64,000 nt of DNA, from positions 33,104,299-33,168,298 of the forward strand of contig NC_068983.1 of assembly GCF_001194135.2 (NCBI RefSeq), read 5' to 3'. Under the pieces are notes generated by a model. That model saw only the letters and a list, made by a program, of their open reading frames with translations, made no database searches and was not told the DNA's origin. Each line of letters starts with the position of its first letter. Position 1 is the first letter of the stretch. This document shows positions 3,848 through 53,829 of the stretch, in pieces. The position numbers were made by a program, and so were the translations under genes. This stretch comes from Octopus bimaculoides (taxonomy: Eukaryota).

Positions 3848-4764
3848 ATTGTTAGGTCATGAAATTCTGAATTTAGTCCACACATCCCCACTATTACTGC
3901 TATGAAACCTCAGTACATATGTTAGGAACCAATACTCTATTATCACAGTAATCCTTTCTGCTATAGGTACAAGGCCTGAAATTTTTTAAGGGAGATGATT
4001 AATTGATTACATCAATCCCAGTGGTCAATTGGTATTTATTTCATTGACCCTGATCTTGGTAGAACATAGAGACAAACAAAACACTGTTAAGCATTCTGTC
4101 CAGTATACTAATGAATCTGCCAGCTCACCACCTTACCCGACTATTATAAGAAAAGCATTGGAAAATATGTTTCCCCATAGAAATGCCGTCTCCTCTGATG
4201 CTACTATAATGACCTCTATCCCTTGGAGTTGTCTGGTCTCATACCGTCTCCTCCTTCTCTGCTCAGACACAACAGCTGTCTTATCTCCACCACACTTCAT
4301 TCCTGTTGTCCTCCCCACACTAGCAACAATACAATACTCAGTAGTTCCTCTCCAGAAGGTCAGTGTTCTTGAATCTTCTGTTTTTATGTATTTTCTGCAA
4401 CAGTTTAAACAGAAGTTTTCTCAGGGATGCATCAAAGGGCTATGGAAACGTCCCCTTATTCCAGCTTAGCAAGTTAGAAACAAAATTAACAATGCAAGCT
4501 GAAACACCTTTGATAAAAAGCTTGATTAGAGTTGACTTCGGCGCTATACAAATCATTCAGAGACCACCCAATATTTTGGTGGAACATCATACAAAATGAT
4601 GCAACAAGTTCTCTATTGCTTTATCTGGAAGAGGGATGGTTACTTGGCTGATATTGAATTTAATAACATGCAAATCACTGATAGACGAAATGGTAAGTCG
4701 AGCAGGACACCCAGTTAACACGACCAGCTGAGAGCCTTTCATCAGCACATTAATAAAATATAGG

Positions 4765-20500: not shown

Positions 20501-23500
20501 CATAATTTTACTGAGCTTGAAGTGTTTTCTGAAGCATAGCAAATCATCAAATATAATTTCAAAAGTCTTACAAGCTGAAAATAAATGCCATGGTCAAGAG
20601 CAGTTCCCTGATTACAGACATCGCTATATCGATAAACATACACATTATACACATGTGTTACACATTTTATAGTTATTGTACGTTCTTTTATTTTTTCTGC
20701 TTTATATTTATACGTTTTTCCAGTCAAGCCTACCCTCCTGTTCACACACAAAAAAACTTTAATTTGTCAATACGTCATTAGGTTCCAGGATGACCTTATA
20801 TCTACCCCAAGGTTTAAAAACGGATAGCCTCAACCATATTGAATCTTGACACCTTATGAAGACAAAAATCTTTACTCTTTTCTAATGATCCACTGTCATT
20901 ACGGTGGAGGCGCAACGGCCCAGTGGTTGGGGCAGCGGACTCGTGGTCATAGCATCGCGGTTTCGATTCCCAGACCGGGCATTGTGAGTGTTTATTGAGC
21001 AAAAACACCTAAAGCTGCACGAGGCTCCAGCAGGGGATGGTGGCGAACCCTGCTGTACTCTTTCACCACAACTTTCTCTCACTCTTACTTCCTGTTTCTG
21101 TTGTGCCTGTAATTCAAAGGGTCAGCCTTGTCACACTGTGTCACGCTGAATATCCCCGAGAACTACGTTAAGGGTACACATGTCTGTGGAGTGCTCAGCC
21201 ATTTGCACATTAATTTCACGGGCAGGCTGTTCCATTGATTGGATCGACTGGAACCCTCGACGTCGTAAGTGACAGAGTGCCAACTGTCATTACAAAAGCA
21301 CTCAATGATCTGCACCCTATTAGTTGAAACTCCCGTTTTGACAATTTAACTTAAGTACTTAGTTAAAACCTCATCCTTATTTGAAATTTTCAGATTATTA
21401 ATTTTATCTTTCAGGAGTCTTATTTCTCAACCACAAGGTCCAGTCCTTGTTGTAGTTTGTTGGCTTGTTTGCCTCAGTGACCAAGAGCTATATTACTGGG
21501 GAAGAAGTTCCTGGTAGGACTTCCCATGATGGACAAGTCAAAGAATTGAAACCAGATTAACATGAACCACATCCCAAAGATGAAAATAGCTTTGTTTAGG
21601 GTCAACATTCCTACTCAGAAGAAGGAAAAAAGGAAAGTTAGAGAAGCATTGATGGCAATTCAAAACCAACAAAACTTGGGAGAGGAACGTCTTCCTTCAA
21701 GTCCTTCAAGATGGGACACTGAGGAAGAGCTGGAAAAGCAGAAATTCAAATGGAAAGAAGCAGAAAAGGCAGCCCAAGGTCAAGAACAGTAGAGAAATAT
21801 TGTCTATGGCCAACATTCCATGGGAAGAACTTAATGGAATAGAAATCAATATGCTAGGTTGAGAGGAGAGGTATATATTATATCAAAGTTTAAATTCAAC
21901 TGAGTGTCACCCTTAGTTGAACTATGGGTGAAACTCAGAGTAGACTGTCAACTTTACTATAATATATAAAAGTATTGTTCATATTATACATTTATCAACT
22001 TACCAGTACATAGAAAGGTACCACAAGTAATCGAAGCCTGTGTAAAAGAGAAAACAAAATAAACAGGAACTCGTTAATAGAAATTAAATAAATAAATGAA
22101 TAATATCTGATATTGCTTTAAAACAAGAACAACAAAATATTAAATTTGAATGTATTAACTAAAGCAGTTGCAACTGAAATTATTTTTGAGAAATATTGAA
22201 ATATTAATATTGCACATGAAAAAACAGTTTTAAATCATCCGAATTGTAGTGAACTTAGGAAGGATATATTAGACATCCTTGATAACATCTAAAGCAGTGG
22301 TTCTCAACCATATTTTGTTTACGGAACCTCTTTGATTCCTACTTTACTGGACTTTCATAGCCATTCACTATATATAAAAACAAATTTTGCTGTATTTTTA
22401 TAATTAAATATTATTAAGAATTGTAAAAAAAAAAATTTTTATATTTTGTGTATTGTAGAAATGTAAGTCATTGCACATAAATTTTAACAACAAAATCATG
22501 TATGGAACCTCAACCCGACTGAATGGTATGAAGTTTCATCATATGTTAAGCATGGAGCGATTCTTATTGGAAGAGATATATCGTCATCATCATCATCATC
22601 GTTTAACATCTGCTTTCCATGCTAGCATGGGTTGGACGATTTGACTGAGGACTGGTGAACCAGATGGTTATACCAGGTTCCAGTCTGATTTGGCAGAGTT
22701 TCTACAGCTGGATGCCCTTCCTAACGCCAACCACTCCAAGAGTTTAGTGGGTGCTTTTACATGCCACCGGCACGAAGGCCTGTCAGGAGGTACTGGCAAC
22801 GGCCGCGCTCGAAATGGTGTATTTTACGTGCCACCTGCACAGGAGCCAGTCCAGCGGGACTGGCAACGAACACGCTCGAATGTCTTACTCCATATGCATG
22901 ATGCAATGAAGACTGGAATGAAATTCGTTAAAGAAAGTTCAAAAATAGTTTTTAGATCAAAGATCTGGGCTAAGAGTATGCAAATATGAAGGTTGACTGA
23001 AAAGTCCTTAAACTGACCAAGATACTCTCATAGAAGCTAACCAAATGAGGTTTATTTTTCAACATTAGTCCTCCTTGCAGTTTTCACACTTCTTCCAATG
23101 GTGTTGCAGTGTTGGATCCCATTAAGGAAGAAGCTTTCATCCTGTTGGTCAAAACAGTCAACAAAAGATATGACATCATCGCCACTGTGATACTAGTTCC
23201 CAATCAAATGAATTTTTTTTTTTTATGTGGGGGAACAGATCATAGTTGGATGAGATTAAATCATGGAAATAAGGAGGGTGATCAATCAGTTCAAAGCCAC
23301 AATCACACACAGCAACCATTGAAATGAACTTGTGTACAGGAGCATTGTCCTGATGAGACGAGACCCCTTTTTGTCAGTTTTCTGGGTGTTTAGTCTTGAT
23401 AGCCTTTCATAACTGCTTCAGCAAGTTGGCATGTACTTTCCGTTGGTAGTGTAGTCCTTTTGAAGATAGTTGAAACTGAGCTAGCATGTGTTAGATTAGA

Positions 23501-26500
23501 ACCATCCAGCCAGTCACAACCATCATCAGCAGGGATATTAGTTGAAGTAGAATCAGACCTCTGACTGTTACTACCAACTCTTTTCTGGTGCCAGAGCTGT
23601 AGGTGACGAGCGACCTGCTGTCTATTCTGCTTACGTAGTGGAGGTGCAATAGCCCAGTGGTTAGGGCAGCGGACTCGCGGTCATAGGATCTCGGTTTCGA
23701 TTCCCAGACCAGGCGTTGTGAGTGTTTATTGAGCAAAAACACCTAAAGTTCCACGAGACTTCGGCAGGGGATGGTGGTGAGCCCTGCTGTACTCTTTCAC
23801 CACAACTTTCTCTCACTCTTACTTCCTGTTTCTGTTGTGCCAGTAATTCAAAGGGCCAGCCTTGTCACACTGTGTCATGCTGAATCTCCCCGAGAACTAC
23901 GTTAGGGGTATACGTGTCTGTGGAGTGCTCAGCCACTTGCATGCTAATTTAACGAGCAGGCTGTTCCGTTGATCGGATCAACTGGAGCCCTTGTCGTCGT
24001 AACCGACAGAGTGCCAACATTCTGCTTACGTTCATCTTCACTTAGAGTGAGCATTCTATTAAGTGGTGGTGATGGTGAAGCCCCATTCTGGATTGGAATT
24101 GCAGACTGTGAACTCACATTGCCAGAAGTGCCATTCTTAGCAAATACATCAGAAAATCTTGGAGAATTTATGCGGTGCTGGCAACCATTGGTGTGCATAG
24201 AAATCTGACATAGAATGAGTCATGCCATGTTTATCATGTGGAGGGTTTTTAGAAGTGTGACCTATAATGTTGTTTAACATGTCAATGAGGTTTTGTAGGT
24301 TTTTCAGCTATAGCAACAGAATCCATTGTAGCAGTTCCTGGGACAGTCAAAGATAGTTTTCTACCATCATTGCTTAAACTAATAGATAGGGATCCATGTA
24401 ATTTCCCTTCTTCTCTGTGGCCTTTAGATTTTGTTGACACAATGCCTTTTGCATCCCAAAAGACTGAGGCCATCACCTTCCCAGCAGATAACACAACCTT
24501 AGCCTTCGTCGGAGAAGGTGAGGAGTTTTCCACTGCATGGATTGTCTATCTCTGGTTCAAAGTGATAACTCCAACACTCAACCTGGGTTTTAGAAATGTT
24601 CAAGGAAACCAGCTGGATCTGCCTCAAACAATGCCAGGTTTTCCCCAATGATATGATCAACCCGGTGTGCTTTTGATCAGGTGTCAGAAGACATGGCATC
24701 CACCAAGCAGAAACCTTCATTATGTCACATTCATGATGCCAAATATTCGCAACTCTTTCATGAGATATGCTACTAGCATTGGCTCCTTGATTTATAGTCA
24801 GTTGCCTGCCATCCTTCATCATGTGACTGGATGTCCAAACTTAGGATCATCTTTACGACACTCCCTTACCCTCCTAAATTCAGCTGCCCACTTTTGCACT
24901 GTTGATAAAGCTGGAATGTTATTCCCTAATGTAGCAACAGGTCATGATGAATATTGTTGGGGGTTAAACTCTTGGCGAAGGTAAAGAATACACACACCCA
25001 GTATTTAGGATAAGGGTTATCCTAAACACTGGGTGGTGTGCGTATTCTTTACCTCCCCCTAAACTCTTTTTCAGCAGGTACTTGATAACACTGCCAAATT
25101 TTGTCCCTTTTTAAGCGAAGTCCTTATTAGGGGGGTTTTGTAGTCGTCTGTGAAGAGTCAGATGTCAGTTTACCTGGAAAGAAACAATGCAGTCATTAAT
25201 AAGATTTCACAGCTCGAGCATCCCTCGAATAGAAAAAAATCAAATCATCAAACTATATTTGTATATGAAGTAGTATTTAATAAGTTGGGTTAGCGAAGCC
25301 TGGAGCAGAAACAGACACACGGCAGCCTGTGAGATTTTATGAATGGCATGGAGATCTCAAGGACACAGTGAGGAACGCATGCGCCTGGCTCCGCGGAGCC
25401 GTCTTGAGGTCATTATCGAGGCTGAAGGAAGTTACTTTAAGTATACAGTTATCTCCCAGCCATAATCTAGTTGATACATGTTCGATTTTTTTTTTCTTTT
25501 AAATACGTTTACTTTTGGATGGAATATTGTTTTCTTTTCCTTTTACACAAACTGTCAAATTTAGCCCTGTACATTGTGTGTAATATTCGGAAATGAACAA
25601 CTGAACCCCTAAATGACTAACATGCTTGTTAAATATTTAGCCATTTAGAATCATTTTAATAAAAATTCAAAGTAAAATCATTTTACGTCCTGAAGCAAGA
25701 TTTCCCCATTTAAACCTATTCTTAAAACAAGGTGACCACGTTGGGTTCATTTATTTATATATTTTTTTATGACGAGGAAACTTCTGATAACCATTTCGCT
25801 TTGCAGTGTTTAATTTTAGTGCTGATTTTTTCAAACACGCCCTATATCATTTATCTGATATTACATCTGATAAAACAAAAACTAATACTTTGTCACACAA
25901 CTATAACCATCTAACGTTAGTCAAATTCAGATTTGGGAACTGCAAAATATTTTAGACGCCCTCTTCCGACCCAGCTTGTTTGTCATTGGAGATAGTTTTA
26001 GATGTAATTAAACATTTTGCACTACTAGTATTGTAGATATTTTTGTATTGTTCATTATGGGGTCATTATTCTTCATAGATAAGAAAGAGTGATTATAGAG
26101 ATTTAGCCGTGAATGTTAACAGGTCGATCAACCGTAGAGACGTTTCATTATGAAATAAACATAAATGTGAATAGAAAAAACACGGTAAATATTAACTACA
26201 GCAAAAATATCCCTATGACAAACTTCCGCAACATGCCATTAAAAAAATCCGGAGTTGCCAAATTCCATCCATCCATAGATGAAAGGGAAAATTGATCTCT
26301 TCCAGCATTTTTGAGTATCCTTCTTTCATACAACGGAAACTACGGTTTTTTACGATTTCATTTAATTATTTTCAAAAGTTTTGTGACAATGAAAGATAAA
26401 AAGGATCTCAGCGGGATTTGAACCCAGAATGTAAAGAGCCTATCAAATACAGAAATAGTTCAAAACTGATTTCGTAAAGTTTCTGTTTGAAAAGCATGAT

Positions 26501-32870: not shown

Positions 32871-33293
32871 TTCTCGGAAGAACATATCTCTACGTTTAGG
32901 TGGCAGTTTTAATAGTCTCATATTGTGGGGAACGACCCATTCCGAAGTTATATTTCGACTTTCCCTTCCTTCTTTGTGCCCTTCAAATTGTCTGTTTAAA
33001 TACTCACTGCACAAACAATTTGCAATTTTTAGGTCATTTTCACTTTAAAATATTTTTTTAATACGCCAGGGTTATATCATTTTCGGAGTCTTTTCCCATC
33101 ATGCACCGTTTTCAGTATTTATGAATACCCCCCAAACCACTGACATCTCACAGGAATCCGTGGTCTGACGTACGCGAAACTTGTTTTATTCCGTTTGTAT
33201 TCACATTTCAGGGGTGGTTTAATTCATAGTATTTCCCCATTATGCACCAGTTTGGTTGTATTAAATTACAGGCAAGCAATCAGATAGTTTTAG

Positions 33294-33330
<37 letters not shown>

Positions 33331-37417: not shown

Positions 37418-37466
<49 letters not shown>

Positions 37467-37995: not shown

Positions 37996-39271
37996 TATAA
38001 GTTCTGTCAGAATTTTGAATAAAGAAAACAAGTGATCAAATGTTATATTTATTTGAAATTTAATCATCAATGTACCTTCCCTGATTATTTATGACTTCCT
38101 TCCATCTATTTACAAGCTTTTAAAATCCCATCAGTGTAAAACTCTTTTGGTTTCAAAGCGAAGAACTCTGAAATGTCAGTTTCAACCTCCTCCTGGCTTG
38201 TGAAAGTTATATCCCTCAAATGATTCTGTAAACTACGAAACAAATGGTAGTCTGAAGGAGCAAGGTCGGGAGAATAGGGTGGAAGAGGAATTTTTTTCCC
38301 AACCAAGCTCTTCGCTCTTCTGTGATGTGATCTTTGCAGTGTGGGGTCGCACATTGTCCTGATGAAACATCACTCCTTTTCAATTCACTAAAGCAGGTCT
38401 TTTTTTTCTTCAAAGCTTGGTTCAAACGCTCTAATTGCTGACAGTAGACTTGAGAATTGAATGTTGCATTAAGTGGTAACAATTCAAAGTGAATTACTTC
38501 TNNNNNNNNNNNNNNNNNNNNNNNNNNNNNNNNNNNNNNNNNNNNNNNNNNNNNNNNNNNNNNNNNNNNNNNNNNNNNNNNNNNNNNNNNNNNNNNNNNN
38601 NNNNNNNNNNNNNNNNNNNNNNNNNNNNNNNNNNNNNNNNNNNNNNNNNNNNNNNNNNNNNNNNNNNNNNNNNNNNNNNNNNNNNNNNNNNNNNNNNNNN
38701 NNNNNNNNNNNNNNNNNNNNNNNNNNNNNNNNNNNNNNNNNNNNNNNNNNNNNNNNNNNNNNNNNNNNNNNNNNNNNNNNNNNNNNNNNNNNNNNNNNNN
38801 NNNNNNNNNNNNNNNNNNNNNNNNCTTCAACTGATAGTGCAGGATTTTCTTCAAGTAATGTCTCAAGGAGCTTATCATCAAACTCAACTGGATGTCCTGT
38901 TCGATCTTCACCTTCAAGGCTGAAATCTCTACTTCTGAAGTTTGCAAACCATCTTCTACAAGTTCTTTCATTCAAGCATTCTTTTCCATAAATTGAGTGT
39001 ATATTTCGAGTCGCTTCTGCGGAACAGTTTCTCTTTTGTACTCATAAAGCATTATGTGCCTCAAATGCTCTTTGGATACTTCCATGTTAGAAAGGGTTTT
39101 AATCAAAGAAATTTTAATTCTATTGCTCTGGAAAATAATATTTAATTAGTTTAAATGTACACAAATGCATAAAAATAATTCTAAATTCCATTAGACATTC
39201 TAAAATACTATTAAATTTCATTCAATTTTAAAAAAAGTAAAATCGGACAGAACTTATGGGATGACCTGATA
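37996..39271 (-). mobile_element. Mariner (Mos1-like DD34D) transposon, decayed, spanning a gap
   Basis: YSPDLAPSDYHLFRSLQN, ERTCRRWFANFRS..DRTGHP and HQDNVRP-like motifs. TIR ataagttctgtc(c/a)g at both ends. Confidence 0.92.
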
Positions 39272-40360: not shown

Positions 40361-42010
40361 TACCCATAAAGGGCTATACAAAGAATTTTTAAGACATCAC
40401 AAAACATAAAGACAGTACAAAACGCAAACATAAAATCGGGGTAATTAAAATAAAATGATAATATGCAAGAATGAAAAAAGTGAGGCGCAATGTCCACTCG
40501 ATCCCTGAAGTCGGGTGGTTACATTTATCCAGTTTTTCACTTTTACGTTCAACGTCATGTAAACATTTTAACGGTTTTGCAACTCAAAAAATTCAAACAC
40601 TCGCGTTACCTTTCTTCCATTAATCATTGTTACGTCCGTCCTTAACAACTGCAAATAATCAGTTCTAGTGGGTGGTTTCTCCACCAACCATATCCATTTC
40701 GTTATTATATTTTCACCAAATTCTTTTATGCACTCGAAGCATCTTTCCTCACGTATCAAAATGCATTTTTCAGCACATTTCTCTGGCATTTTCACTCTTA
40801 TTATTTCTTCTAACCTCTCGAATTTTCTCTCCATCTGCTCGCAATTCTCGTACTTTATCATATCAAAAGCCCCTTGTATTTCACATCTTTATCCGTTCTC
40901 TCCTCCTCTTCTTGTACATTATTAGTTTCTGGCTTTTTTTATGTCTTTTTGTTTTCCGTTGACCGTTCCTTTGACTTATTTTTCCTTCACTTTTTAGGGT
41001 TAGTAGCTCCATTTTCGTTCTTCTCCTTTGTTTTCTCTGTTTCACACTTCTGTCTCTCTTTTATTTCCTCAGTGTGGTCTACAATTCTTTCCTCCTCTGT
41101 TTGTGCTTTCTTTTGCTGTGGCTGTGTGAACTCATATAGGGGGCATTTGGTCTTCATATGACCTCTCTCCTCGCATATATAACAATTTGGTTTTCTTCCC
41201 TCGACTACGACATTTAACGGTTTCTCGTCCTCCACTTCTATCTGGTAGGGAATTCTTTCTATGTCCTCGAATGTGGCAAAAAGCCACATTTCGAGTTCAA
41301 ATCCCCACCATTTGCACACTTTTGTTTTCGCCACTAGTCCCAATTCCGGCTCCTCCTTGGTTGCAGCCAGCACTGTTGCAACCAACCACTCTGGTTTAAT
41401 GTCTGGTGTAACTCTGAGAATTCGTATTTTCACACTTCTTCTTCCTCTATAGCTTGGTAGCAATGCTATTTTCTCACTTTTTAATATGTTAGTTGTATGC
41501 TTGGTTGCCTCTTCTATAGTGGCGAACCTCACCTCAACCGTACCGAACTTTCTTCCTCTGTTGATGTACGTGGCTTCATTGACAATTTCACCCAGGCACT
41601 CCTCGATTTCTTCTTCCGTCACCATTTCAATTTTAGAGGTTTCGACAGCCTGTGTACGATACACTACTGTGCTCAGAATTTTATTTTCTTTAGTCTCTTT
41701 TGGGGTACACAATTTGTATGAGTCTCACTCAACTTCTATCAAATTCCTGCTTCTTGTCACCTCCTCCATATCCAACTTGATTAACTTGGTTTCCAGCGGC
41801 ACTGGCTTCCTCACCGCAGTGGCCTTGGCGTAGCTCTCCATACTGGAGACACTACCACTTGCCATAGCTGGGAAAAATGCAGCAGCTCACGTGAAATGCA
41901 ACCGTAATAATTCCACACAAATCACAATTATTCACCGAGACAGTTTTCACAAAGTAACACAACAGTTTTCACAATAATTCACAGAGCCGTTATACCGCGA
42001 TGCAGTTCGA
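40361..42010 (-). mobile_element. ORF1-only non-LTR retroposon (half-L1/Tx1-like), gag-like protein with CCHC knuckle
   Basis: ATG at 41865 (MASGSVSSMESYAKA), one in-frame TGA, then ORF to 40987 with CYICEERGHMKTKC. A frameshifted C-terminal frame lies at 40568-40861. 3' end tagccctttatgggta next to a microsatellite. No endonuclease or RT. Confidence 0.7.
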
Positions 42011-43213
42011 CCGGCATGCTGACGTTTCTGCCAGTTCACCGCTCTACACACACTATATATTTGTTCATCACTTCAGATTTATTATTGTTCTTATTTTATT
42101 GTCGTTTGACTGAAAATCTTTCGTCACACATCTTGTGACCTCTTCAGCGATTCTCCATCTCACGTGTCTTTACCTGTTCTGTTTAGTCCATTCTGTCTAA
42201 AGAATGGAATAAACAGTGTTTTATACGTTTCGTTCAACTAAAACCCTTCAAGGCGGTGTCGCAGTACGGCTGCAATCCAATAACTGAAAGCATAAAATCC
42301 CAAGCTACATCAGCTGCATGCGTATAGTGGTGCTTTATTTTGGATGATTTATCCGATACGACATTCTTTTCTTGTTTAGTCTCTGTAGTTATCTTACAAC
42401 TACTTTGTTTGGTTTTTATGTGGACATAATTGTTTTCTTAAAACATGGTTAATACAGTATACCTACGGTTTTCCGATGTTAGTTCTCTTGTATAAACGAT
42501 GCTGTTACTGATCTCGCATACATTTGAATATTTTCGGCACATTTGTTTTTGTTAATCTTGACTACTAGTTTACTTAATAATCAAAAAGCAGGGTAATATA
42601 CTTGTCATGTCTACGGAATTTGTCTTCTTAACCACTTCTGTTTGTTTCTCGTTTCGTCGTACAGGTTAGCCTCTCATTAGAATTGTTTTGCACCTTATTC
42701 TGAGAATATTTCCCATGGACGGATGCATTACGTGTACATTCACAATAGAATTTCGTTAGTATACTCTGAGCAAGCTTGTTTCCCTGGTTATCTATCTTGG
42801 AAGAGGGATGACATGCTGCAGACGCAAGGTTTGGAAACATTACCTATTTTTAGTAACATTTTTTTTTAGTTCAGTATGAATATTCCAGTGGTATCAGTTA
42901 TTTCTAGTTTAAACCTAGAAAACATTTTATAGCTTATTTGAAGGAAGAAAGAAAGGAATATTTTCTAAACACAAAAAAAATTACCTGTCGTAAATTGATG
43001 AGATTCATAAAATGCCAGAAGAGTTGCAGATATTTGTTTTTTCCTTTCTTATTTTCTTTTTGCTAAAAAGATGTTCTCCACCATTTCCAATGGCACCTTG
43101 AGAAAAATCTGAAAAATCTCCGTCAAAACGGAGAAGTTCTTACTTGTGTATGCTACATATCGCTGACGTCCGCCTAGATGTGTGTCTACATGTACGTACG
43201 TACGTACGTACGT

Positions 43214-43576
43214 GTGGAGGCGCAATGGCCCAGTGGTTAGGGCAGCGGACTCGCGGTCATAGGATCGCGGTTTCGATTCCCAGACCGGGCGTTGTGAGTG
43301 TTTATTGAGAGAAGACACCTAAAGCTCCGGCAGGGGATGGTGGCGAGCCCTGCTGTACTCTCTTCCACCACAACTTTCTCTCACTCTTTCTTCCTGTTTT
43401 TGTTGTTCCTGTATTTCAAAGGGCCAGCCTTGTCACACTGAATATCCCCTTGAACTACGTTAAGGGTACACATGTCTGTGGAGTGCTCAGCCACTTGCAT
43501 GTTAATTTCACGAGTAGGCTGTTCCGTTGATCAGATCGACTGGAACCCTCGACGTCGTAAGCTATGGAGTGCCAAC
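43214..43576 (+). mobile_element. SINE family A copy
   Basis: TSD acgtacgt; small internal deletions relative to the other two copies. Confidence 0.9.
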
Positions 43577-45490
43577 ACGTACGTATGTATGTATCCACGC
43601 ATGCATTTATGCATGTATGTCTGTAAATATAATACATCCAATGAACAACCATATTCTGGCAACTACTTGTGTATGTATTTTCCAATTGTAATTCTTTGGG
43701 AAATTACTTGTAGCTCTTTTATATTCAGTTGATATCTCCTCTATTTGCTGTTCATTTTTATTGGAAATTTATTCTGTGTCCGCTGTGGCCCAGCTATCAT
43801 TGGTCTAAATAAATAACTTTTATATCAAATATACACTACTCATTGCCATTATTCTGTTAACGCAGCACAAATGACTACAATGCTAAAAGTGTATAGATTT
43901 CCTTCCAAACAACCAAAAGGTATTTCAGTTTATAAAAGCAACAGTAGTTTCTTCTGAATATCTAACGATATTGTCACTGGTTTTTATTACTGGAAATCTA
44001 ATATTATGTTGATTGTCGCTTTCAAAGAAACGATACTAAAAGGCTTTCTTTATCTAAGTTAGAAATGTTTCCTACGCCTTCTGTTTCTTTTAAGCTTTCT
44101 AGTAACTCTTTAGTTGAACGAATAATGTACCATTCAACTATGTAGTTGTTAAAATCAGTGTCAAAAGCAAAGAAGCTGATATTGTGGAGATCTGGAAAAC
44201 TTGATGTACTTAGGAGCGACAATGATTAATCAAGATAAAGAACTATTCAGAAAATAGGAAAATCCTTAGTGAAACAGATAAATGTTGTGGTGATTTTTTG
44301 GTTGTGGGAATGTGTGGGTGTCCATGAGTAACTCATTAGAATATTTCCACGGATATAGACGGGTGGTACTAAAGTGCCTAATATGTACTATGTGGATCTT
44401 GTTTCTTTCCTCTCTGTGTCTATCCCTTCTATGTATATCAATATCTACTCCTTACTGGGATTAAAGAAGATTGAATATTTCTTTTTAATGTTTTAATCTT
44501 TATTTTACCGTCGACGACTGAGTGGTCGACATACACTTCGGATCTTTCTGATTTGGCGGGCGCCACTTTTTATCTACCGAAACACTTTAAAACTTCGTAT
44601 ATAGAAAAATATAATAACTTTTCATCAGAAAAAAGCAAAATAGGCAGCATATTTGGCGACGATGGTGACGACGACGACAACAAAAACTGACTACATCAAA
44701 TATAGATTAAGCAACAGCTTACTCCAATCCATTACAGAGACGCACAACAGGAGCAGTAGTAACTAAGTTTCCTTTTCTTTGCCAAGGCCATAATGGTTTT
44801 CTTCACTTCATCCAAGGAAGGCTTGGAAACAGCCTTAACAGATATTTTTTGGTGAAATCTCTTTTTATTGCAAAAAGTACATATGGCACCATAAGTGTCA
44901 TCTTTAGAACAGGAGATAGGACTAAGGTGTAAGTTGAAATTGCTTGAGTGATAGCTACCCATCAATTGGTTCCACATTATTTGGCATGATAAAACACAAG
45001 GGTTACTGTCAGGGATATCAGTGACGATCTCAAAGTCTGGGTAGTCGTCAATTTTATTGTGCAATATGAACGGGTAATCACCAAATATTACAATGGCATA
45101 TAGGGAAAAAGGACGATTGGCAATTTATAACAGTGGTAGACTACCTATAACAATTAGATAATTTAATCTGTTTATAACATCTTCGATAAGTTAGATGATG
45201 ACATGCTACTTACGACTAGAAAATATAATAAATATAAATACTTCTTTAGCAGGAATCTGTGGTGATAAATCAATCACATATAAACTATAAGTATTTAATC
45301 ACCATAGATAAATTCTAGCTCAGACTATGTAAACGCTGTGGTGAGTTATACACACCACGATGCTGAACATGCATGCATGTTGCATATTAACAATCTCACT
45401 CGTTTTCACCGTTATAATAACAGTTTCAATAAGTACAGAAATAAGTTTTATCTATAGGTTGAAGAAACGAAGATAAAGAAATCATATACT

Positions 45491-48400
45491 TGTAGTGAAA
45501 CCTCTCTCTCGGGCATTCAATCATAAATGATAACGAAACTACTACTTCGGTTGCCTTGGACCCTTCTATTCATCATCCTGATTGGTTGTTATTTTGCGCG
45601 GCAATTATCCCCATGTTCTGCTTGCTAAGGGGGCATTACGTCCAATCGTGGCTTCAAATAAAGTCACGTGATAGAGAGTTTTTCTGGGTTTCCGGTGAGC
45701 CTTTTTCGCCTATAAATAAGCCCGATCCAACGACGGCAATCGTCTTCGATTCTAGATCTCTCGCTGGTCGTGTCGTTGACCACACATACAGAACACAGCT
45801 ACAGCCAGTTCCAGCGCCGACGTCTTCACCACCAATGTACTGTCTACCATTGTCGTCGCCAGCAACACCAACATCAAGCGCGGTTTTATCTCGACCCTGT
45901 TTGAGTGGATGTTTCCACTCACGATCAACAATCAAAACTAACCAGCTAGAATATACTATACCAGGTAACACGGTCACAGCATTCGACGCTCAAGACACAT
46001 AGTGTGATACTACAGCTCTGCTCCTTGGCCACAACTTCCTGCGTATGAACATTCTATTTCCTTGTATAACTCTTATATGAACTGGTATTTCTCTATTCTC
46101 AGTGTTTTAAGACCTTTTACAGTCTATGTTACAGACTCTTTTTCTATGTTCTGTGTTTCCTTTCATTCACACGCACACTTGTACTCTCACATATTGTACA
46201 CACACTATTGTTTATACGACTGTCCGTCACTTCACATTGTTGTATACATTCTCTTGTACACAAAGGCCTGATTTATCTACTGTGTTAATTTTATATGTCG
46301 CATGCACGCGCACACAGACACAAACAGTTTCACAATAAAATTTATTCTCATTATATATCTAACGGTTGAGTTTGTCCTAAGTTCTTTTACTGGCACTATG
46401 GCTCGTATCTCTTACGACGAGCCTTCTCTCTTATATATCTTGTTTTGTGTTCGACCGTGCGGCATAGTAAAAAGGAGCCTTTTCCGTCTACGTCGCCATC
46501 TCCTTTGGTTCGCACGGTCGAAGTTATAGTAGAAAGTGGGTTATACATCTTTAGATTGTATACCTGACTTTCCTACTATAATTTTAAAGAATATATAGGA
46601 AAGTGGGTTATACATCTTTAGATTGTATACCTGACTTCCTACTATAANNNNNNNNNNNNNNNNNNNNNNNNNNNNNNNNNNNNNNNNNNNNNNNNNNNNN
46701 NNNNNNNNNNNNNNNNNNNNNNNNNNNNNNNNNNNNNNNNNNNNNNNNNNNNNNNNNNNNNNNNNNNNNNNNNNNNNNNNNNNNNNNNNNNNNNNNNNNN
46801 NNNNNNNNNNNNNNNNNNNNNNNNNNNNNNNNNNNNNNNNNNNNNNNNNNNNNNNNNNNNNNNNNNNNNNNNNNNNNNNNNNNNNNNNNNNNNNNNNNNN
46901 NNNNNNNNNNNNNNNNNNNNNNNNNNNNNNNNNNNNNNNNNNNNNNNNNNNNNNNNNNNNNNNNNNNNNNNNNNNNNNNNNNNNNNNNNNNNNNNNNNNN
47001 NNNNNNNNNNNNNNNNNNNNNNNNNNNNNNNNNNNNNNNNNNNNNNNNNNNNNNNNNNNNNNNNNNNNNNNNNNNNNNNNNNNTAATTCCACGCATGCGC
47101 ACGGCGTTACTACAGAGCTCCCTCGCCAGAGCGGAAACGCACGATAAATGAAATCTGTTAGAACGCCTGAGGCAGGATGGCCACTGAAAACCACCCACAA
47201 GATGTGGCACACACAAAGAAAATTCAAAGAAATGAAATGTACACGTGTGAAATACATGCATGCAAGGTATAAATGAAATGACAATGACAAAACAACCGTG
47301 ATGACAACTGTCCAGGAAACTGGAATCACGCGATGTAAAAGTCTGAGTGTTTGTTTTCCCTGAAAGGAAAAAAAATGTATGAGTGCACAAGTGTGTGTGT
47401 GAGAAAGAACACAGAACAAGTGAAAGTGTCTGTAGTATAGACTGCGAAAAATCCCAAAACACCGAGATAGAGTTCATTGATGAAGNNNNNNNNNNNNNNN
47501 NNNNNNNNNNNNNNNNNNNNNNNNNNNNNNNNNNNNNNNNNNNNNNNNNNNNNNNNNNNNNNNNNNNNNNATTGGCGAAAACCTCGAAGAAAAATTTTCT
47601 TAACCCAAGATGAAAAAACGACCGTGTGAAATGAATAACAAGAGTTATTGTGTGGCATAAAAGATGTATGTGTATGTGAGAGTGTGAAATGCGACATATA
47701 AGAACATAAAAAGCAGGCCGTAATTCTTTGTCTGTTTTTCGTGAGTGGAAAAAGAATCCACTCTAACAGAGGCGAGAATAAAAACCGCTCTTGTTGAGTC
47801 GTGTTGACTATGGTTGGAGATGTTGGTAATGTGTAGTTCGGTCTCCATGGCCGTATTTGTTCTTTAGTCGAGTACACCAGTTATAAGTTGGTAGTCCAGA
47901 GTCCATGCTGCGTTTTTCTTCGTCGGGGGTCACCACTTTAGTAGAAAGTGGGTTATTGCAGCTCAGCGGGCTGCGTGATCGAATCACGTCGGGGGTCACC
48001 AGTTATAGGAAAGTGGGCTATACATCTTTAGATTGTATACCTGACTTTCCTACTATAAACTTAAGAATATAACGGAACGCTGAACTCCAGACTATCAACT
48101 TAAACAACACTTTTATTCAGGTGGTAAATATATAAACATCTTTAGTTCTTGTTGTTACAGCTTCTGTGTGTATGAGCATAGTGCTGGGACGTTGTTCTAT
48201 AGATGTGAGCGAGCTGTCGAGCGTAAGTCCGAAAAATGTAGAGAGACAGCTTAAACACACCCATGCTCAATCGCTGGCCAGCGAGAAAGAGAATGAATTG
48301 AGCGGGAAACGCTTGCTTGTTTAATTCCACGCATGCGCACGGCGTTACTACAAATATAACGGAACGCTGAACTCCAGACTATCAACTTAAACAACATTTA

Positions 48401-50206
48401 TTCAGGTGGAAAATATATACATCTTTAGTTCTTGTTGTTACAGCTTCTGTTGTTGGGNNNNNNNNNNNNNNNNNNNNNNNNNNNNNNNNNNNNNNNNNNN
48501 NNNNNNNNNNNNNNNNNNNNNNNNNNNNNNNNNNNNNNNNNNNNNNNNNNNNNNNNNNNNNNNNNNNNNNNNNNNNNNNNNNNNNNNNNNNNNNNNNNNN
48601 NNNNNNNNNNNNNNNNNNNNNNNNNNNNNNNNNNNNNNNNNNNNNNNNNNNNNNNNNNNNNNNNNNNNNNNNNNNNNNNNNNNNNNNNNNNNNNNNNNNN
48701 NNNNNNNNNNNNNNNNNNNNNNNNNNNNNNNNNNNNNNNNNNNNNNNNNNNNNNNNNNNNNNNNNNNNNNNNNNNNNNNNNNNNNNNNNNNNNNNNNNNN
48801 NNNNNNNNNNNNNNNNNNNNNNNNNNNNNNNNNNNNNNNNNNNNNNNNNNNNNNNNNNNNNNNNNNNNNNNNNNNNNNNNNNNNNNNNNNNNNNNNNNNN
48901 NNNNNNNNNNNNNNNNNNNNNNNNNNNNNNNNNNNNNNNNNNNNNNNNNNNNNNNNNCACACAAAGAAAATTCAAAGAAATGAAATGTACACTTGTCTGA
49001 GTGTTTGTTTTCCCTGAAAGGAAAGAAAATGTATGAGTGCACAAGTGTGTGTGTGAGAAAAAACACAGAACAAGTGAAAGTGTCTGTAGTATAGACTGCG
49101 AAAAGTCCCAAAACACCGAGATAGAGTACATTGATGAAGACGTCGGCGCAGGAACTTCTATAGCTGTGTTCTGTATGTGTGGTGGTAATGGGTCAGTTGA
49201 AACGGGGCGACTGCTTATAGTTGGTAGTAGTAATTGTTGTCGTCACGGTGGTAATCTTGGTTGGCGCACGACGCTGGTGGCGAAAAGGCTGTTTGGTGAT
49301 GAGTGTTTGAAGAGGTACGCTTTTACAGAACGATCGACAGACAAATCTCTGTATGACCATTAGTGAAAACCTCGAAGAAAAATTTTCTTAACCCAAGATG
49401 AAAAAACGACTGTGCGAACTCAAAAAGGAGAAATGGTGACGAATGGAATAACAGAGGACTCCTTTCATATAAACGTGTCACACGGTCGAAACCAAAATAT
49501 ATATCAAAGATGATATACAAGTAATTACGTTATACTACGAACATTAGTGAATTCGTAAATACCAGTAATGAGACGATAGAAAAAAACCAACCGTGTGAAA
49601 TGAATAACAAGAGTTATTGTGTGGCATAAAAGATGTATGTGTATATGAGAGTGTGAATGCGACACTAATAAAAACAGGCCGTATTTGTTCTGTAGTCGGG
49701 TTAACCAGTTATAAGTTGGTAGTCGAGAATTCTTGCTGCGTTTCTTCTTCGTCGGGGGTCACCAGTATAGTAGAAAGTGGGTTATTGCAGCTCAGCGGGC
49801 TGCGTGATCGAATCACGTCGGGGGTCACCAGTATAGTAGAAAGTGGGTTATACATCTTTAGATTGTATACCTGACTTTCCTACTATAATTTTAAAGAATA
49901 TAACGGAACGCTGAACTCCAGACTACCAACTTAAACAACATTTATTCAGGTGGAAAATATATACATCTTTAGTTCTTGTTGTTGGGACGTTGTTATGTAG
50001 GTGTGAGCGAGCTGTCGAGAGTAAGTCCGAAAGATGTAGAGAGACAGCTTAACACGTAAAGAGGCTGTCTCGAGAGTTCGAATATTAGAGACACTCTTGA
50101 CACGTCCATTGCTCTATGCTGGCCAGCAAGAAAGAGAATGAATTGAGCGGGAACGCTTGGTTGTTTAATTCTACGCATGCACACGGCGTTACTACAAAGT
50201 ATTACA
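45491..50206 (+). mobile_element. ~1.04-kb solo LTR (45491-46524 plus 50201-50206) split by a nested insertion
   Basis: Begins TGTAGT, ends ATTACA, flanked by 4-bp TSD TACT (45487-90 / 50207-10). Contains CCAAT (45580, 45642), CACGTG (45665), TATAAATA (45711) and AATAAA (46334). Confidence 0.78.
46525..50196 (-). mobile_element. Tandem array of a non-coding miniature LTR retrotransposon (TRIM-like), tRNA-Trp primed
   Basis: LTRs of ~350-365 bp at 49832-50196 and 48004-48352; partial LTRs at 48353-48457, 47084-47114 and 46525-46647. PBS at 49797-49830 and 47968-48001; PPT-like ggcgagggag at 47115-47127; 4-bp TSD AAGT (46521-24 / 50197-200). Three internal gaps plus one bordering gap limit certainty. 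Confidence 0.8.
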
Positions 50207-50859
50207 TACTAAATTTATTTATTTACGTTTATTTAATAATAGACTATGGTAAAGTTTCAATTCAGAGATTTGTTGGGAATATTTTCTTTTCGTTATCTTA
50301 TGTTTCGTCTCTTCTTCAATTTTGGCGTAAGCAAGGTAAAATCCTCCAAGTCGGAATCTGACCTTTCTAATCAGACTTTTACCCTATAAATAGGCTAATT
50401 ACCAAAACAAAAAAGTGTATTTAAGACCGATTATTTCAAGAAGTTTATTAAGTTTTGAGTCCATTTCATGTTCCCTGTTTTTATATCTGTTTAATCACGG
50501 TGGTCAATAACTACCGATTTTACCCAATTTTGATAGGTTTTGATGTTTGGTACCCAAATTAGAATTATACTTTCTGCGTGGTTTTTTAACCCCTTTGAAC
50601 TGATTTTTTTTCCACAGTTTACATAAAATGTTGAGGACGTCAAATATTTTAGCCCTTAATATGTCAAAATTTGTCATTAAAAAAAAAAAATTATCAAGTT
50701 TGAGTGGGTTTTACCAAAAATTTGGAAATTTTTTTATCAGAAACTTAAATTTTTCATGTATCTCCTATTTTCATAAATTTCTCAAATTTATGTTGGCCTA
50801 TGCACTCTAGGCTGTAGCTTGACTGAAAGACAATAAACATGCTNNNNNNNNNNAAAATG

Positions 50860-52150
50860 ATAAATTCCCACTCTGCGCACAATGTGCTCAGGTGGCACTT
50901 CAGATTGTCTAAATTTAGCACACTGCATGAATATTGCAGTTTCTTCTTCTGATCAAAATCTTATAAATCTCGATGAAAATTGATCAGTAGTTAACTCAGT
51001 GATACTTGATAGTTGCTTTTGATCATTCTGAATGTCTTTTTTCTCATGAATTTGAAACTTTTTCAAGATTCGGGGAATATTTAAAAGTGCCCTTGCCAAC
51101 ATATTTCAGTGACATCAAACATTTTGCCAGTTTCTTGTTTATTGGTATTCAGATCATTGAAAAGCGAACAGAAACTTTAAAACAAATGTTAACTTATGCA
51201 TCTCAGTTTAGGCCAGGCTGCTTCCATGCTATTGTAACCAGAGAAACTGTCTTTCATATTTGTACGCAGAGTATGTGAAAGATATGTTTATTGACAGACA
51301 CACATTATGAACAAAAGTTTCTCAAACAAGCATATTCTTATTGCTATATACACATGTTATGGAAAGAACTTTTTCATGCTGATGCATGCTAATTATCATT
51401 ATAAACAATACCAATATTAGACTGTGTAGTGTTCATTTATTTTAACTGCTTCTGTTTTCATTTGCTGCGATTCATTGTAACTGTTGCATTCTAGTTAAAA
51501 TATCAGCAAATGTGCTGATCTCCTCACTACCACTACCTTAGGAAGATGCATGCCATTTACATTCGTAGAACATGGTACTGAAAAATGCTTTTTATCTAAA
51601 TCATTATCAAACATGGTGGGTTTGTTCTTAAAACTTTGGGTATTCTTGGATAGTTATAGTCAATGCAACCCAGTTTCATCCTCATTATACATGTCGAACA
51701 ATTAAAAACTCCACATTGCTTGATTTTCTTGGTTAGTTGCTGCTTGTTTCTCTATGGCATTTTCTAAATTGCCATAACGACCCATTATTTGCTTCAAAAT
51801 TGTTGATACCAATATGCCTAGCTAAAGTGGCAGCAGACTTTTGATTGTCTGTCCCACATTGTTACCACAGGATCATTGATAAATAAACCACTTCATCATT
51901 GCCTCTTCAATATCTCTATCTTTTACACTTTCTTGCACCAATATATAATACAAAGAGAATTTGTATTAACATTATATTTCAAAATAAAAAAAAAAGATAC
52001 AGAGATTTTGTTCTCAGACTTGCAAGTATCCAAAACAGTTTACTCTTTAATATACTTTTCACAAAACTTCACCATCAAAGCACAGATTCTGACTTCCTTG
52101 AGTTTCAGTTCCTTGTTCAGAGATGTGGCCATATGCTTTTTCATTATATT
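50860..52150 (-). mobile_element. Degenerate pogo/Tigger transposase relic
   Basis: Minus-strand fragments GINNFEANNGSLWQFRKCH (CENP-B HTH) and YNEDETGL (DDE start). Confidence 0.75.
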
Positions 52151-53317
52151 CTTGGACTCCTTTGAAGTCATGATGTAAAATATAAGGCTGAAAGTTTCCT
52201 AATCATTGAATATCAATGAGAAAATATAAAGTAGTACAAGTGTGTTGCGGATATTGGTTAATGTTACAGTGTATTACCATGAAACCATGCTAAACCTAAT
52301 AATTTGGCATGAAAACTATCCAAAGGTAAACATACAGACTTTTGGCTACTGTCCAGTTGATCAGACTGTCTTTCCTTCATGGTAAGGAGGATTTTAAAGA
52401 ATTCTTGGTTCTACAGATTAGCTCCTTTTTTCATTCAGTGTAGGTGTCAAGGGATTACTTTTCTACTCTCAGGAAGCAAAGACAATTTTAATAAATCAAA
52501 AATTTAACTTGTATGTTATTTTATATAGCCTTATTCATCCACATATATATATATATATATATATATCTGTGCAGGTCACATGTAAAAACACCATCTGAGC
52601 GTGGCCATTGCCAGTACCACCTGACTCGCCCTTGCGCCGGTGGTACATAGAATTACCCACTACACTCTCAGAGTGGTTGGTGTTAGGAAGGGCATCCAGC
52701 TGTAGTAACTCTGCCAGATCAGATTGGAACCTGGTGCAGCCATCTGGCTCACCAGTCCCCAGTCAAACCGACAAACCCATGCCAGCATGGAAAGCAGATG
52801 TTAAATAATGATGATAATGATGATGATGATATTATATATATATATATATATATATNNNNNNNNNNNNNNNNNNNNNNNNNNNNNNNNNNNNNNNNNNNNN
52901 NNNNNNNNNNNNNNNNNNNNNNNNNNNNNNNNNNNNNNNNNNNNNNNNNNNNNNNNNNNNNNNNNNNNNNNNNNNNNNNNNNNNNNNNNNNNNNNNNNNN
53001 NNNNNNNNNNNNNNNNNNNNNNNNNNNNNNNNNNNNNNNNNNNNNNNNNNNNNNNNNNNNNNNNNNNNNNNNNNNNNNNNNNNNNNNNNNNNNNNNNNNN
53101 NNNNNNNNNNNNNNNNNNNNNNNNNNNNNNNNNNNNNNNNNNNNNNNNNNNNNNNNNNNNNNNNNNNNNNNNNNNNNNNNNNNNNNNNNNNNNNNNNNNN
53201 NNNNNNNNNNNNNNNNNNNNNNNNNNNNNNNNNNNNNNNNNNNNNNNNNNNNNNNNNNNNNNNNNNNNNNNNNNNNNNNNNNNNNNNNNNNNNNNNNNNN
53301 NNNNNNNNNNNNNNNNN

Positions 53318-53349
<32 letters not shown>

Positions 53350-53829
53350 ATATATATATAATGTATATATATATGATATATATAAATGTACCTGTCTCAT
53401 CATCATTTAACAGCCATTTTTCCACACTGTCATGGGTTGATGGTTTGACAGAAAATGATGACCTACAAGATTGCACTGAGCTCCAGTGTCTGCTTTGGAT
53501 GTCCTTTGTAATACCACCCACTTCACATAGTGTACTCTGTATACAAATAAACTTCCCACTCACGCACACAAAGGAGGAGTTAGTCAACAACTATTAGTGG
53601 TGTCCTTACTAATTCAGGTTTGATTTCCTATTTGGTACACTGACCTGTCTCTATAGTATTGGTGTATTTTTTCTGCACCACTCCTTGTAATGTAAAGTAC
53701 AAACACCATATATTGTCCATAAGGAACAAAGTTGGGCTCCTGTGTCTGTGAGAATCAAATCTAAATTATATAGCATTGGCTCTCCATCAGTGTCTGATAG
53801 AAAGACAGAAAGAAGCAGAGAAATATTGC

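Follow-up and report, generated by a model that had tools for sequence, protein, structure and literature searches.

Positions 45487-50210 of the Octopus bimaculoides sequence analyzed here (a stretch of 64,000 nucleotides, hereafter the window) hold three nested LTR-element layers, the junctions of which can be read directly. It is highly probable that this structure is a three-level nest produced in the Octopus genome by three separate integrase-mediated insertions, and the order of events is outer element, then E2, then E1. Specifically, a solo-LTR-like element on the plus strand is interrupted by a 3.67-kb insert consisting of two copies of one family, E1 and E2, both of which lie on the minus strand, with E1 (46594-48352) situated inside the 3' LTR of E2. 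The original prediction had described a nested LTR structure with TACT as the outer and AAGT as the inner 4-bp duplication, which direct reading confirms, and had taken the insert for a tandem miniature element that arrived as one unit. The locus is instead an ordinary pile-up of mobile elements that merely resembles a tandem array: the apparent tandem repeat and the three assembly gaps both stem from the presence, within 3.7 kb, of two copies with approximately 95% similarity.

Three layers and the order of their insertion

The outer element comprises 1040 bp (45491-46524 together with 50201-50206, plus strand) and carries the TG...CA ends originally proposed, its full termini being TGTAGT...ATTACA. 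Its main part starts TGTAGT and closes with AAGT, the four bases that served as the E2 target, while its last six bases, ATTACA, follow the right-hand E2 duplication and occupy with it positions 50197-50206. The TG...CA termini and TACT duplications (45487-45490 and 50207-50210, both read directly) immediately flank this single outer LTR, an arrangement that is statistically weak when taken alone. A TATA-like motif at 45711 and an AATAAA at 46334 lie within the element, GC content changes from 27% to 42-54% at its border, and its CpG observed/expected ratio is 1.10 as compared with 0.52 for the window. The outer ends are placed only by the TG/CA termini, the target-site duplication, and the GC and CpG step, which leaves the TACT pair weaker than the others: with borders free over about ±200 bp, approximately 0.7 chance 4-bp pairs are expected by our own estimate. 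The outer element has no internal terminal repeat and no second copy in the window; its 148-aa ORF gave no Pfam match and no homologue in a protein search, and the sole array that Tandem Repeats Finder reported in the region is a 15-bp repeat within the outer LTR. A candidate inverted repeat in the host flanks (45461-45481 and 50288-50309, picked out by eye), which would have pointed to one more layer (for example, a MITE), was rejected with a blastn E value of 3.3.

The insert itself (46525-50196) measures 3672 bp, 1021 of them N, and is enclosed by AAGT at 46521-46524 and 50197-50200. As originally predicted, it lies antisense within the last 10 bp of the solo-LTR-like element (6 bp from its end plus the AAGT), and it contains four LTR copies of about 350 bp, all on the minus strand. 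These are the 3' LTR of E1 (A', 46594-47114, broken by the first gap), the complete 349-bp 5' LTR of E1 (B, 48004-48352), the complete 365-bp 5' LTR of E2 (D, 49832-50196), and the 3' LTR of E2 (C), which is present in two pieces: a distal 69 bp severed by E1 (46525-46593) and a proximal piece that enters the third gap (48353-48457). The last four bases of the distal piece and the first four of the proximal piece are AATA (46590-46593 and 48353-48356), and this pair, the left and right duplications of E1, constitutes a third duplication that had been missed and that changes the interpretation. The distal piece of C is identical to D 49832-49900 at 69/69 positions, as compared with 63 matches, 3 mismatches and 2 gaps against B, and the proximal piece (48353-48439) is identical to D 49897-49983 at 86/87 positions, after which a 15-bp indel separates C from D where the gap begins. 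Placed on D, the two pieces share the AATA at 49897-49900 and nothing else, such that an intact LTR can be rebuilt from the flanks of E1. Consistent with this reconstruction, the uninterrupted E1 target, TTTTAAAG-AATA-TAACGG, persists in D (49889-49906), and the right-hand junction of C and E1, ...GTTACTACA|AATA|TAACGG, is ungapped sequence. The chance of a 4-bp flank match is p ~0.005 at local base composition and, since the ends of E1 and E2 are fixed independently by LTR homology, the AATA and AAGT duplications are not attributable to chance.

Variants within the LTRs pair the four copies in the same manner. A' starts TATAGGAAAG, as does B, both having a deletion of 2 nt that are present in C and D (reading TATAG--GAAAG); the right-hand 31 nt of A' match B at 31/31 positions and D at 29/31, and the remaining readable part of A' matches B at 53/54 (one gap of 1 nt). 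C and D, for their part, agree in three indel or substitution states, so that diagnostic variants join A' with B and C with D, whereas B and D are only 94.6% identical and differ by 47- and 29-bp indels. Each of E1 and E2 thereby possesses two long terminal repeats in the same orientation that are nearly identical in their readable parts. In the sense orientation, B displays a TATA-like motif at 219 and an AATAAA at 236, and E1 is inserted 3' of the conserved AATAAA, within the predicted U5 of the E2 3' LTR. The inner LTRs begin with TG, and their first six nucleotides are those of the outer element; their 3' end is TA in all four copies rather than the canonical CA, and TG...TA is a recognized non-canonical type of LTR terminus.

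Because D is without E1, yet both LTRs of a new copy share one template, E1 must have arrived after E2 had integrated at this site. The history would begin with an LTR retrotransposon bearing a 1040-bp LTR, whose insertion would have generated the TACT duplication and which would later have lost all but a solo LTR, presumably when its two LTRs recombined. The second and third steps are those written in the junctions: insertion of E2, a non-coding LTR element of approximately 1.7 kb, in antisense orientation 6 bp from the end of the outer LTR, giving the AAGT duplication, and insertion of E1, a diverged copy of the E2 family in the same orientation, at a point in the predicted U5 of the E2 3' LTR, giving the AATA duplication. 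The elements have CpG observed/expected ratios of approximately 1.0-1.1 (0.52 for the window) and LTR pairs that are about 99% identical, which indicates that the insertions are young. In repeat-rich plant and animal genomes, LTR elements are found within the LTRs of older elements, each layer with its own short duplication; removal of an inner layer restores the empty site, and the outermost layer may be a solo LTR. The octopus nest does not differ essentially from these classic cases, except that two of its three layers derive from the same small non-coding family.

Competing explanations and the assembly gaps

Unequal or ectopic recombination is the usual origin of multi-LTR arrays, and the adjacency of the inner copies could in principle have arisen in this way between neighboring elements after insertion. 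Indels between the copies do fall at microhomologies, and TRIMs provide documented cases of the mechanism (PMC6934838, discussion); recombination between LTRs, however, yields a hybrid shared LTR rather than an LTR divided at one exact point and bearing a 4-bp duplication, and it cannot give an element whose two LTRs carry private shared variants. No mosaic middle LTR without flanking AATA was seen at the locus, and we regard this route as very improbable. An equally slight chance attaches to the entry of a tandem-array TRIM (LTR-I-LTR-I-LTR) into the outer LTR as one unit, as first proposed. The 1.83-kb periodicity of LTR plus internal region, the single AAGT duplication enclosing the entire 3.67 kb, and the existence of tandem TRIM arrays in bivalves and plants (PMC6934838) all speak for such an event. 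The middle of the insert is nevertheless not a shared LTR: a complete B meets C at position 66 of the latter, AATA occurs on either side, and the 69 bp that C lacks stand at the far end of the insert. Moreover, there are four LTR equivalents for two internal domains, not x and x-1; C holds E1 and D does not, which is impossible straight after reverse transcription of one RNA, and the predicted U5 of the 3' LTR, where E1 sits, lies outside the genomic RNA. The splitting of C by E1, the displaced 69 bp, and the separate AATA duplication thus identify a nest rather than a tandem-TRIM array.

A different concern is that short-read contigs of dispersed copies were mis-scaffolded, in which case the nest or its second element would be absent from this site. 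Three N gaps are crowded into 3.7 kb, and each coincides with the edge of a repeat; colinear sequence in the paralogous copy spans every one of them: gap 1 (46648-47083, 436 N) corresponds to 263 bp of B (48059-48321), gap 2 (47486-47570, 85 N) to 219 bp at 49140-49358, and gap 3 (48458-48957, 500 N) to the rest of the LTR (~185-206 bp) plus the 95 bp at 47115-47209. Given these counterparts, nothing points to a hidden gag-pol. The lengths of the N runs (436, 85 and 500) depart from the 263, 219 and ~290 bp expected, the 402-bp contig between the first two gaps (47084-47485) is anchored by scaffolding only, and the 15-bp difference between C and D sits at a contig end, each of which, like the clustering of the gaps at repeat edges, favors an artefact. 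The nest junctions, on the other hand, all fall in ungapped contigs (...-46647, 47571-48457 and 48958-50843), including the diagnostic boundaries between outer element and E2, between C and E1 on both sides, and from E2 through the outer remnant into the flank; the junctions share only 4-5 bases, too few for a k-mer chimera, and three independent contigs yield a consistent nest with exact duplications and an exactly restored empty LTR site. An artefact is accordingly improbable, though somewhat less so than either of the array explanations. Doubt is greater, and confined to the outer layer, as to whether the 1040 bp are a fragment or some other repeat whose TACT and TG...CA borders are coincidental, which we consider unlikely but far from negligible. 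The sequence has one copy in the window and no homologue in searches elsewhere (protein searches and pattern scans), independent homology covers only 45779-46520, and the first 288 nt have no counterpart. Set against this are sharp GC and CpG steps at both proposed borders, a TATA-like motif and AATAAA in LTR-like order, the termini themselves with their six initial nucleotides in agreement with the inner LTR, and the fading of homology to a block in E2 within ~10 nt of the proposed 3' end. The three-layer nest remains the reading adopted below.

Internal domains and primer-binding sites

The internal domains of E1 (47115-48003, including gap 2) and E2 (48958-49831) are non-coding and lie on the minus strand. 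The indels between them noted in the original prediction were measured, from HSP coordinates, as three: 92 bp (47249-47340), 120 bp (47729-47848, with a 13-bp overlap) and 155 bp (49427-49581, between imperfect direct repeats of ~26 bp). These indels indicate that E1 and E2 derive from different source copies. The longest N-free ORF in either element is 108 aa and has no Pfam match. A purine-rich GGCGAGGGAG with one pyrimidine within it, constituting a weak tract, is located 3 nt from the 3' LTR in E1; the corresponding region of E2 falls in gap 3. Scrambled pieces of the outer LTR type are also found inside the internal domain, and E2 contains blocks homologous to the outer LTR, in one of which the resemblance ends about 10 nt short of the proposed outer 3' end. 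The E2 interior was also considered as an entire miniature member of the outer family, running from LTR end through spacer to LTR start; this idea was rejected because the first 300 nt of the outer element showed no significant similarity to the E2 spacer (z = 0.2 and -0.3).

Beginning 1-2 nt past the 5' LTR is a primer-binding site matching the 3' end of tRNA-Trp, in agreement with the primer originally named: the plus-strand sequence TCGAATCACGTCGGGGGTCACCA agrees with the 3' 22-mer of mouse (not octopus) tRNA-Trp-CCA at 21/22 positions plus one extra G (PMC7555719). The motif occurs four times, all within E1 and E2 and on the minus strand only, where 0.03 occurrences are expected. Each element thus holds two primer-binding sites (47921-47935 and 47987-48001 in E1, 49750-49764 and 49816-49830 in E2) with further tRNA-like sequence between them, and in E2 a 36-nt perfect repeat is seen (49750-49785 and 49816-49851). 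Similarity to tRNA-Trp presumably extends beyond the 3' 22 nt into the T-arm; we know of no open paper that prints the longer string. ARAGORN found no tRNA in the nest, a search of Rfam over 5.7 kb returned no match at E <= 1, and a search with the 76-nt primer-site region returned only two chance lncRNA matches (E 5-7). Folding of the 46-nt tRNA-like stretch was uninformative (z = -1.6).

Retroviral clones with tRNA sequence beside the LTR are known. In principle, reverse transcriptase can continue past m1A58 into the primer tRNA while plus-strand strong-stop DNA is being made (PMC8599865). Such read-through would leave an LTR end, a primer-binding site and further tRNA complement, as found in E1 and E2. 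In E1 and E2, by contrast, the product would have become fixed in a transposing family and been followed by a second LTR end and primer-binding site, through a presumed mechanism. As a speculation to which we give little weight, the leader may be a fixed fossil of a reverse transcriptase that read approximately 46 nt into its tRNA-Trp primer, past m1A58, and re-primed, leaving two usable primer-binding sites, with the internal domain having been built from pieces of outer-family LTR.

Relatives of the family and its significance

The family comprises elements of ~1.6-1.8 kb with LTRs of 349-365 bp (1759 bp for E1 with N counted, or ~1.6-1.75 kb when corrected for gaps), and its non-coding, presumably trans-mobilized character was correctly anticipated: no ORF has a Pfam match. 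With no gag or pol of its own, it would be transcribed from its own LTRs and rely upon the proteins of an autonomous element for packaging, reverse transcription and integration. That partner is most likely of the Gypsy type, as judged from the 4-bp duplications, which are compatible with Gypsy and no more, the superfamily being defined by phylogeny of the reverse transcriptase and integrase and by domain order. A link to Gypsy has been made for animal TRIM-like elements that produce 4-bp duplications, and a Gypsy element that uses tRNA-Trp is on record (PMC10886601).

TRIMs are usually defined by LTRs of about 100-250 bp and a total length below 1 kb (PMC6934838, PMC10886601). Like the octopus family, they are non-autonomous, lack ORFs, have two LTRs with a primer-binding site by the 5' LTR, are mobilized in trans and, in animals, produce 4-bp duplications, yet the sizes given above exceed these limits and place E1 and E2 outside the strict definition, so the label of miniature element or TRIM does not hold. 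Tandem-array TRIMs follow LTRx-I(x-1), neighboring units sharing an LTR (PMC6934838), whereas the octopus arrangement is nested; the biv-TRIM of bivalves has no recognizable primer-binding site (PMC6934838), while that of the octopus family is clear. In size, the family falls between the TRIM and LARD classes. LARDs measure several kb and have long LTRs; they and other deletion derivatives of autonomous LTR retrotransposons share with E1 and E2 a non-coding internal domain of unrelated or rearranged sequence, set between functional LTR and primer-binding signals and, in E1, a putative purine tract. Helenus/TRIMp3 elements are likewise small, non-autonomous LTR elements with tRNA-derived sequence, the animal members having 4-bp duplications and being linked to Gypsy (PMC10886601). 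The Helenus LTR carries its tRNA-like part in sense orientation, and this part is a putative Pol III promoter (PMC10886601), whereas the octopus counterpart belongs to the leader, runs antisense to the tRNA as an extension of the primer-binding site, and is scored by no tRNA model. Neither Rfam nor ARAGORN gave a match to the octopus LTRs, the position at which Helenus-type elements have tRNA-derived sequence with Pol III promoter boxes.

A blastn comparison of 45400-50300 with the window found no further copies outside the nest, and the window holds no autonomous partner. Metagenome, prokaryotic-genome and viral contigs were scanned, without any result, for exact matches to an LTR 28-mer, to a 22-mer common to the two families, and to a 24-mer spanning LTR end and primer site, and exact look-up of 10 nest ORFs in a protein collection gave no match. 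A neighboring transposable-element ORF matches proteins of O. bimaculoides and O. vulgaris, at 90-94% for O. bimaculoides, in accord with the cephalopod origin proposed at the outset. The order of insertion and the young copies suggest a non-autonomous LTR family recently active in Octopus.

Nothing about E1 and E2 bears on a long-standing open question. The value of the locus lies in annotation: a tandem-TRIM lookalike resolves into two ordinary sequential insertions, its three gaps are explained by near-identical repeats and not by hidden genes, and repeat annotators and assemblers should model the structure as a nest. The double primer-binding site, with its extended complementarity to tRNA-Trp, is a minor oddity concerning errors of reverse transcription, and the family may help in the cataloguing of cephalopod repeats. 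Were both parts of the speculation about its leader and internal domain true, it would represent an uncatalogued cephalopod family, possibly preferring insertion into LTRs, that records the capture of a primer tRNA, once suggested as a step by which tRNA-derived SINEs arose.

Three nested insertions and their order

Direct reading of 44800-51000, with all junctions printed, places a 1040-bp solo-LTR-like sequence, the outer element, at 45491 (TGTAGTGAAA...) to 46524 and 50201-50206 (ATTACA), flanked by a TACT target-site duplication (45487-90 and 50207-10). Lodged within this element is an insert of 3672 bp (46525-50196), of which 1021 are N distributed over three gaps, bordered by a second duplication, AAGT (46521-24 and 50197-200). 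Analysis with a repeat finder and self-blastn shows that the insert repeats at ~1.83 kb and comprises two internal regions along with four LTR-like copies. Self-blastn detects no recurrence of any part of the nest elsewhere in the 64-kb window, and searches of metagenomic, prokaryotic and viral contigs and of proteins likewise returned no further copy. The outer TG...CA ends, the TACT and AAGT duplications and the four LTR copies of the original prediction are all present on direct reading, as are the two internal regions differing by indels, which measure 92 bp (47249-47340), 120 bp (47729-47848, with a 13-bp overlap) and 155 bp (49427-49581, flanked by imperfect direct repeats of 26 bp).

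The original prediction had further read the insert as a tandem element that arrived as one unit, and here the junctions argue otherwise. Specifically, on the plus strand, the first 69 bp of the insert (46525-46593) agree at 69 of 69 positions with the beginning of LTR D (49832-49900), and a new LTR opens directly after them, TATAGGAAAG.... At the far side, the complete LTR B ends in ...GTTACTACA at 48352 and is followed by AATA and then TAACGGAACG..., a stretch that represents the LTR from position 66 onward and matches D (49897-49983) at 86 of 87 positions. Given these LTR pieces on either side, and the presence in LTR D of the uninterrupted target TTTTAAAG-AATA-TAACGG, LTR C is split by a same-family copy, E1 (46594-48352), which made its own 4-bp duplication, AATA (46590-93 and 48353-56). 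Private LTR variants agree with this arrangement: the deletion TATAG--GAAAG is common to A' and B, which are also identical at their far end (31/31, vs 29/31 for A' and D), while three indel or substitution states are common to C and D against B, and identity between B and D reaches only 94.6%, with indels of 47 and 29 bp.

The nested LTR structure of the original prediction thus stands as three layers, each with its own 4-bp duplication: the outer LTR (TACT); E2, consisting of 5' LTR D, internal region 2 and the split 3' LTR C (AAGT); and E1, consisting of 5' LTR B, internal region 1 and 3' LTR A' (AATA). Since a single template serves for both LTRs of a new copy, the presence of E1 in C and its absence from D place the arrival of E1 after the integration of E2 at this site. 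Integrase-type insertion, each time with a 4-bp duplication, is shown to have occurred three times and in this order, and arrival as a single unit is excluded.

In addition to its TG...CA ends, the outer element carries a TATA-like motif at 45711 and an AATAAA far downstream at 46334, and sharp GC and CpG steps coincide with both of its proposed borders (GC rising from 27% to 42-54% at 45500 and falling from 47% to 21% at 50200). It is represented by one copy only, and by our own estimate TG/CA ends with a 4-bp match are not rare if borders are allowed to float; for these reasons it is best called a likely solo LTR.

Assembly gaps in and around the nest

A coding region concealed in the gaps had been set beforehand as a test of the original prediction. 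Gap 1 (46648-47083, 436 N) has its counterpart in LTR B at 48059-48321, giving an expected 263 bp; gap 2 (47486-47570, 85 N) corresponds to E2 49140-49358 (expected 219 bp); and gap 3 (48458-48957, 500 N) corresponds to the rest of the LTR (~185-206 bp) plus E1 47115-47209 (95 bp), or ~290 bp expected, the N-run lengths being rough only. All three are spanned by colinear sequence of the other copy, with flanks in the correct order and orientation, and nothing suggests a hidden coding region of 4-5 kb.

Given two copies that are ~95% similar, a short-read assembly would be expected to break at these points. The junction-bearing stretches are ungapped (up to 46647, 47571-48457 and 48958-50843), and the 402-bp piece at 47084-47485 is the sole piece held by scaffolding alone. 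At the edge of gap 3, LTR C (48440-48457) contains 15 bp (ACAGCTTCTGTTGTT) absent from its partner LTR D, a difference explained by loss from D through a microhomology deletion after insertion, or else by an error at the contig end. Several assembly gaps are adjoined by TA-rich microsatellites (33242-33330, 37420-37466, 52850-53360), translated as YIYIYI, and gaps in the window thus tend toward simple or interspersed repeats.

Signals, class and age of the inner family

Four copies of the motif TGGTGACCCCCGACG lie in the window (0.03 expected), all on the minus strand and two in each element, with the LTR-proximal copy 1-2 nt from LTR B or D; this strand and position indicate that E1 and E2 read on the minus strand. 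In both complete LTRs, a TATA-like motif and AATAAA lie 17 nt apart in sense orientation (D 234/251, B 219/236), positions that suggest a very short R followed by a U5 of ~90 nt; E1 inserted at sense position 297-300 of LTR C, within the predicted U5. All four inner LTR copies start with TG, but their last bases are TA where CA would be canonical (sense 3' ends 46525, 46594, 48004, 49832), and their first six bases, TGTAGT, are common to the outer LTR. Only one purine tract is visible, a weak GGCGAGGGAG in E1, 3 nt from the LTR.

Each element possesses two primer-binding sites, in minus-sense leaders at 47921-48003 (E1) and 49750-49831 (E2). In E2 they form part of a perfect 36-nt repeat (49750-85 and 49816-51), of which 16 nt belong to the primer-site region (a 1-nt spacer and the 15-nt motif) and the other 20 nt are the final bases of the LTR. 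Between the primer-site copies, 30 nt presumably prolong the tRNA-Trp complement into the T arm and beyond, by the standard of vertebrate tRNA; this tRNA-like continuation is confirmed by none of the tools applied and receives no score from Rfam. The predicted Trp primer site is supported in that plus-strand TCGAATCACGTCGGGGGTCACCA matches the 3' 22 nt of tRNA-Trp-CCA, with mouse as the reference, at 21 of 22 positions with one extra G (PMC7555719). Plus-strand strong-stop synthesis usually stops at m1A58 (PMC8599865), and the double site may be a fossil of such synthesis running beyond m1A58 into the primer tRNA, followed by re-priming.

N-free ORFs reach at most 108 aa and lack Pfam matches, consistent with the predicted non-autonomous nature of the family. 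Its size (~1.6-1.8 kb, LTRs of 349-365 bp) exceeds the strict TRIM limits of <1 kb and 100-250-bp repeats (PMC6934838, PMC10886601) but is far below that of a LARD, and the layout of E1 and E2, with LTR C split by an AATA-flanked copy, does not fit the LTRx-I(x-1) order by which tandem TRIM arrays are defined (PMC6934838). Taken together, the original interpretation holds as to a nested, non-autonomous cephalopod element, while its tandem, single-unit and miniature parts do not. Pol II transcription would start in the 5' LTR and tRNA-Trp would prime reverse transcription, with packaging, reverse transcription and integration presumably performed by proteins of an unseen autonomous element. This partner is most likely Gypsy-type, since Gypsy has been linked to TRIM-like families of animals that make 4-bp duplications, and one Gypsy primed by tRNA-Trp has been recorded (PMC10886601). 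LTR pairs are ~99% identical, and CpG observed/expected is ~1.0-1.1 in the nested elements vs 0.52 in the whole window and 0.35 in the right flank; together these values indicate that the insertions are young.

Neighbouring repeats and outer-type sequence within the inner family

An ORF at 40987-41712 (minus strand, 241 aa) with a CCHC zinc knuckle below the Pfam cut-off has multiple paralogues in Octopus bimaculoides and O. vulgaris (39-94% identity); matches of up to 94% to octopus proteins identify the host as octopus, in keeping with the predicted cephalopod origin. The ORF probably represents the gag-like portion of a different repeat, one with no LTR in common with the nest. Pieces of a mariner/Mos1-type transposase (38216-38975, minus strand; Transposase_1, with HTH_48 below the Pfam cut-off) flank a gap at 38502-38824. 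Additionally, interspersed repeat families of ~270 bp and ~388 bp, unrelated to the nest, occur in both orientations at 77-90% identity, in two coordinate groups (3554-3866, 7729-8001, 14489-14631, 22576-22886 and 52567-52833; 20899-21284, 23631-24019 and 43209-43577).

The internal domain of the inner family (47374-47806, 49028-49664) contains five blocks homologous, in the same sense, to the outer element at 45779-46520: 45779-45841 (87%), 45863-45936 (76%), 46091-46195 (79%), 46296-46393 (66%) and 46429-46520 (z ~9 vs shuffles). The blocks are rearranged and resemble two partial runs, and no block in the internal domain derives from the first 288 nt of the outer element. In the last block, similarity stops ~10 nt short of where the outer element is proposed to end on its 3' side, mild support for this border. 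The nest is an ordinary pile of retrotransposons, and, to judge from these shared blocks, the inner family evidently made filler out of an outer-type LTR.
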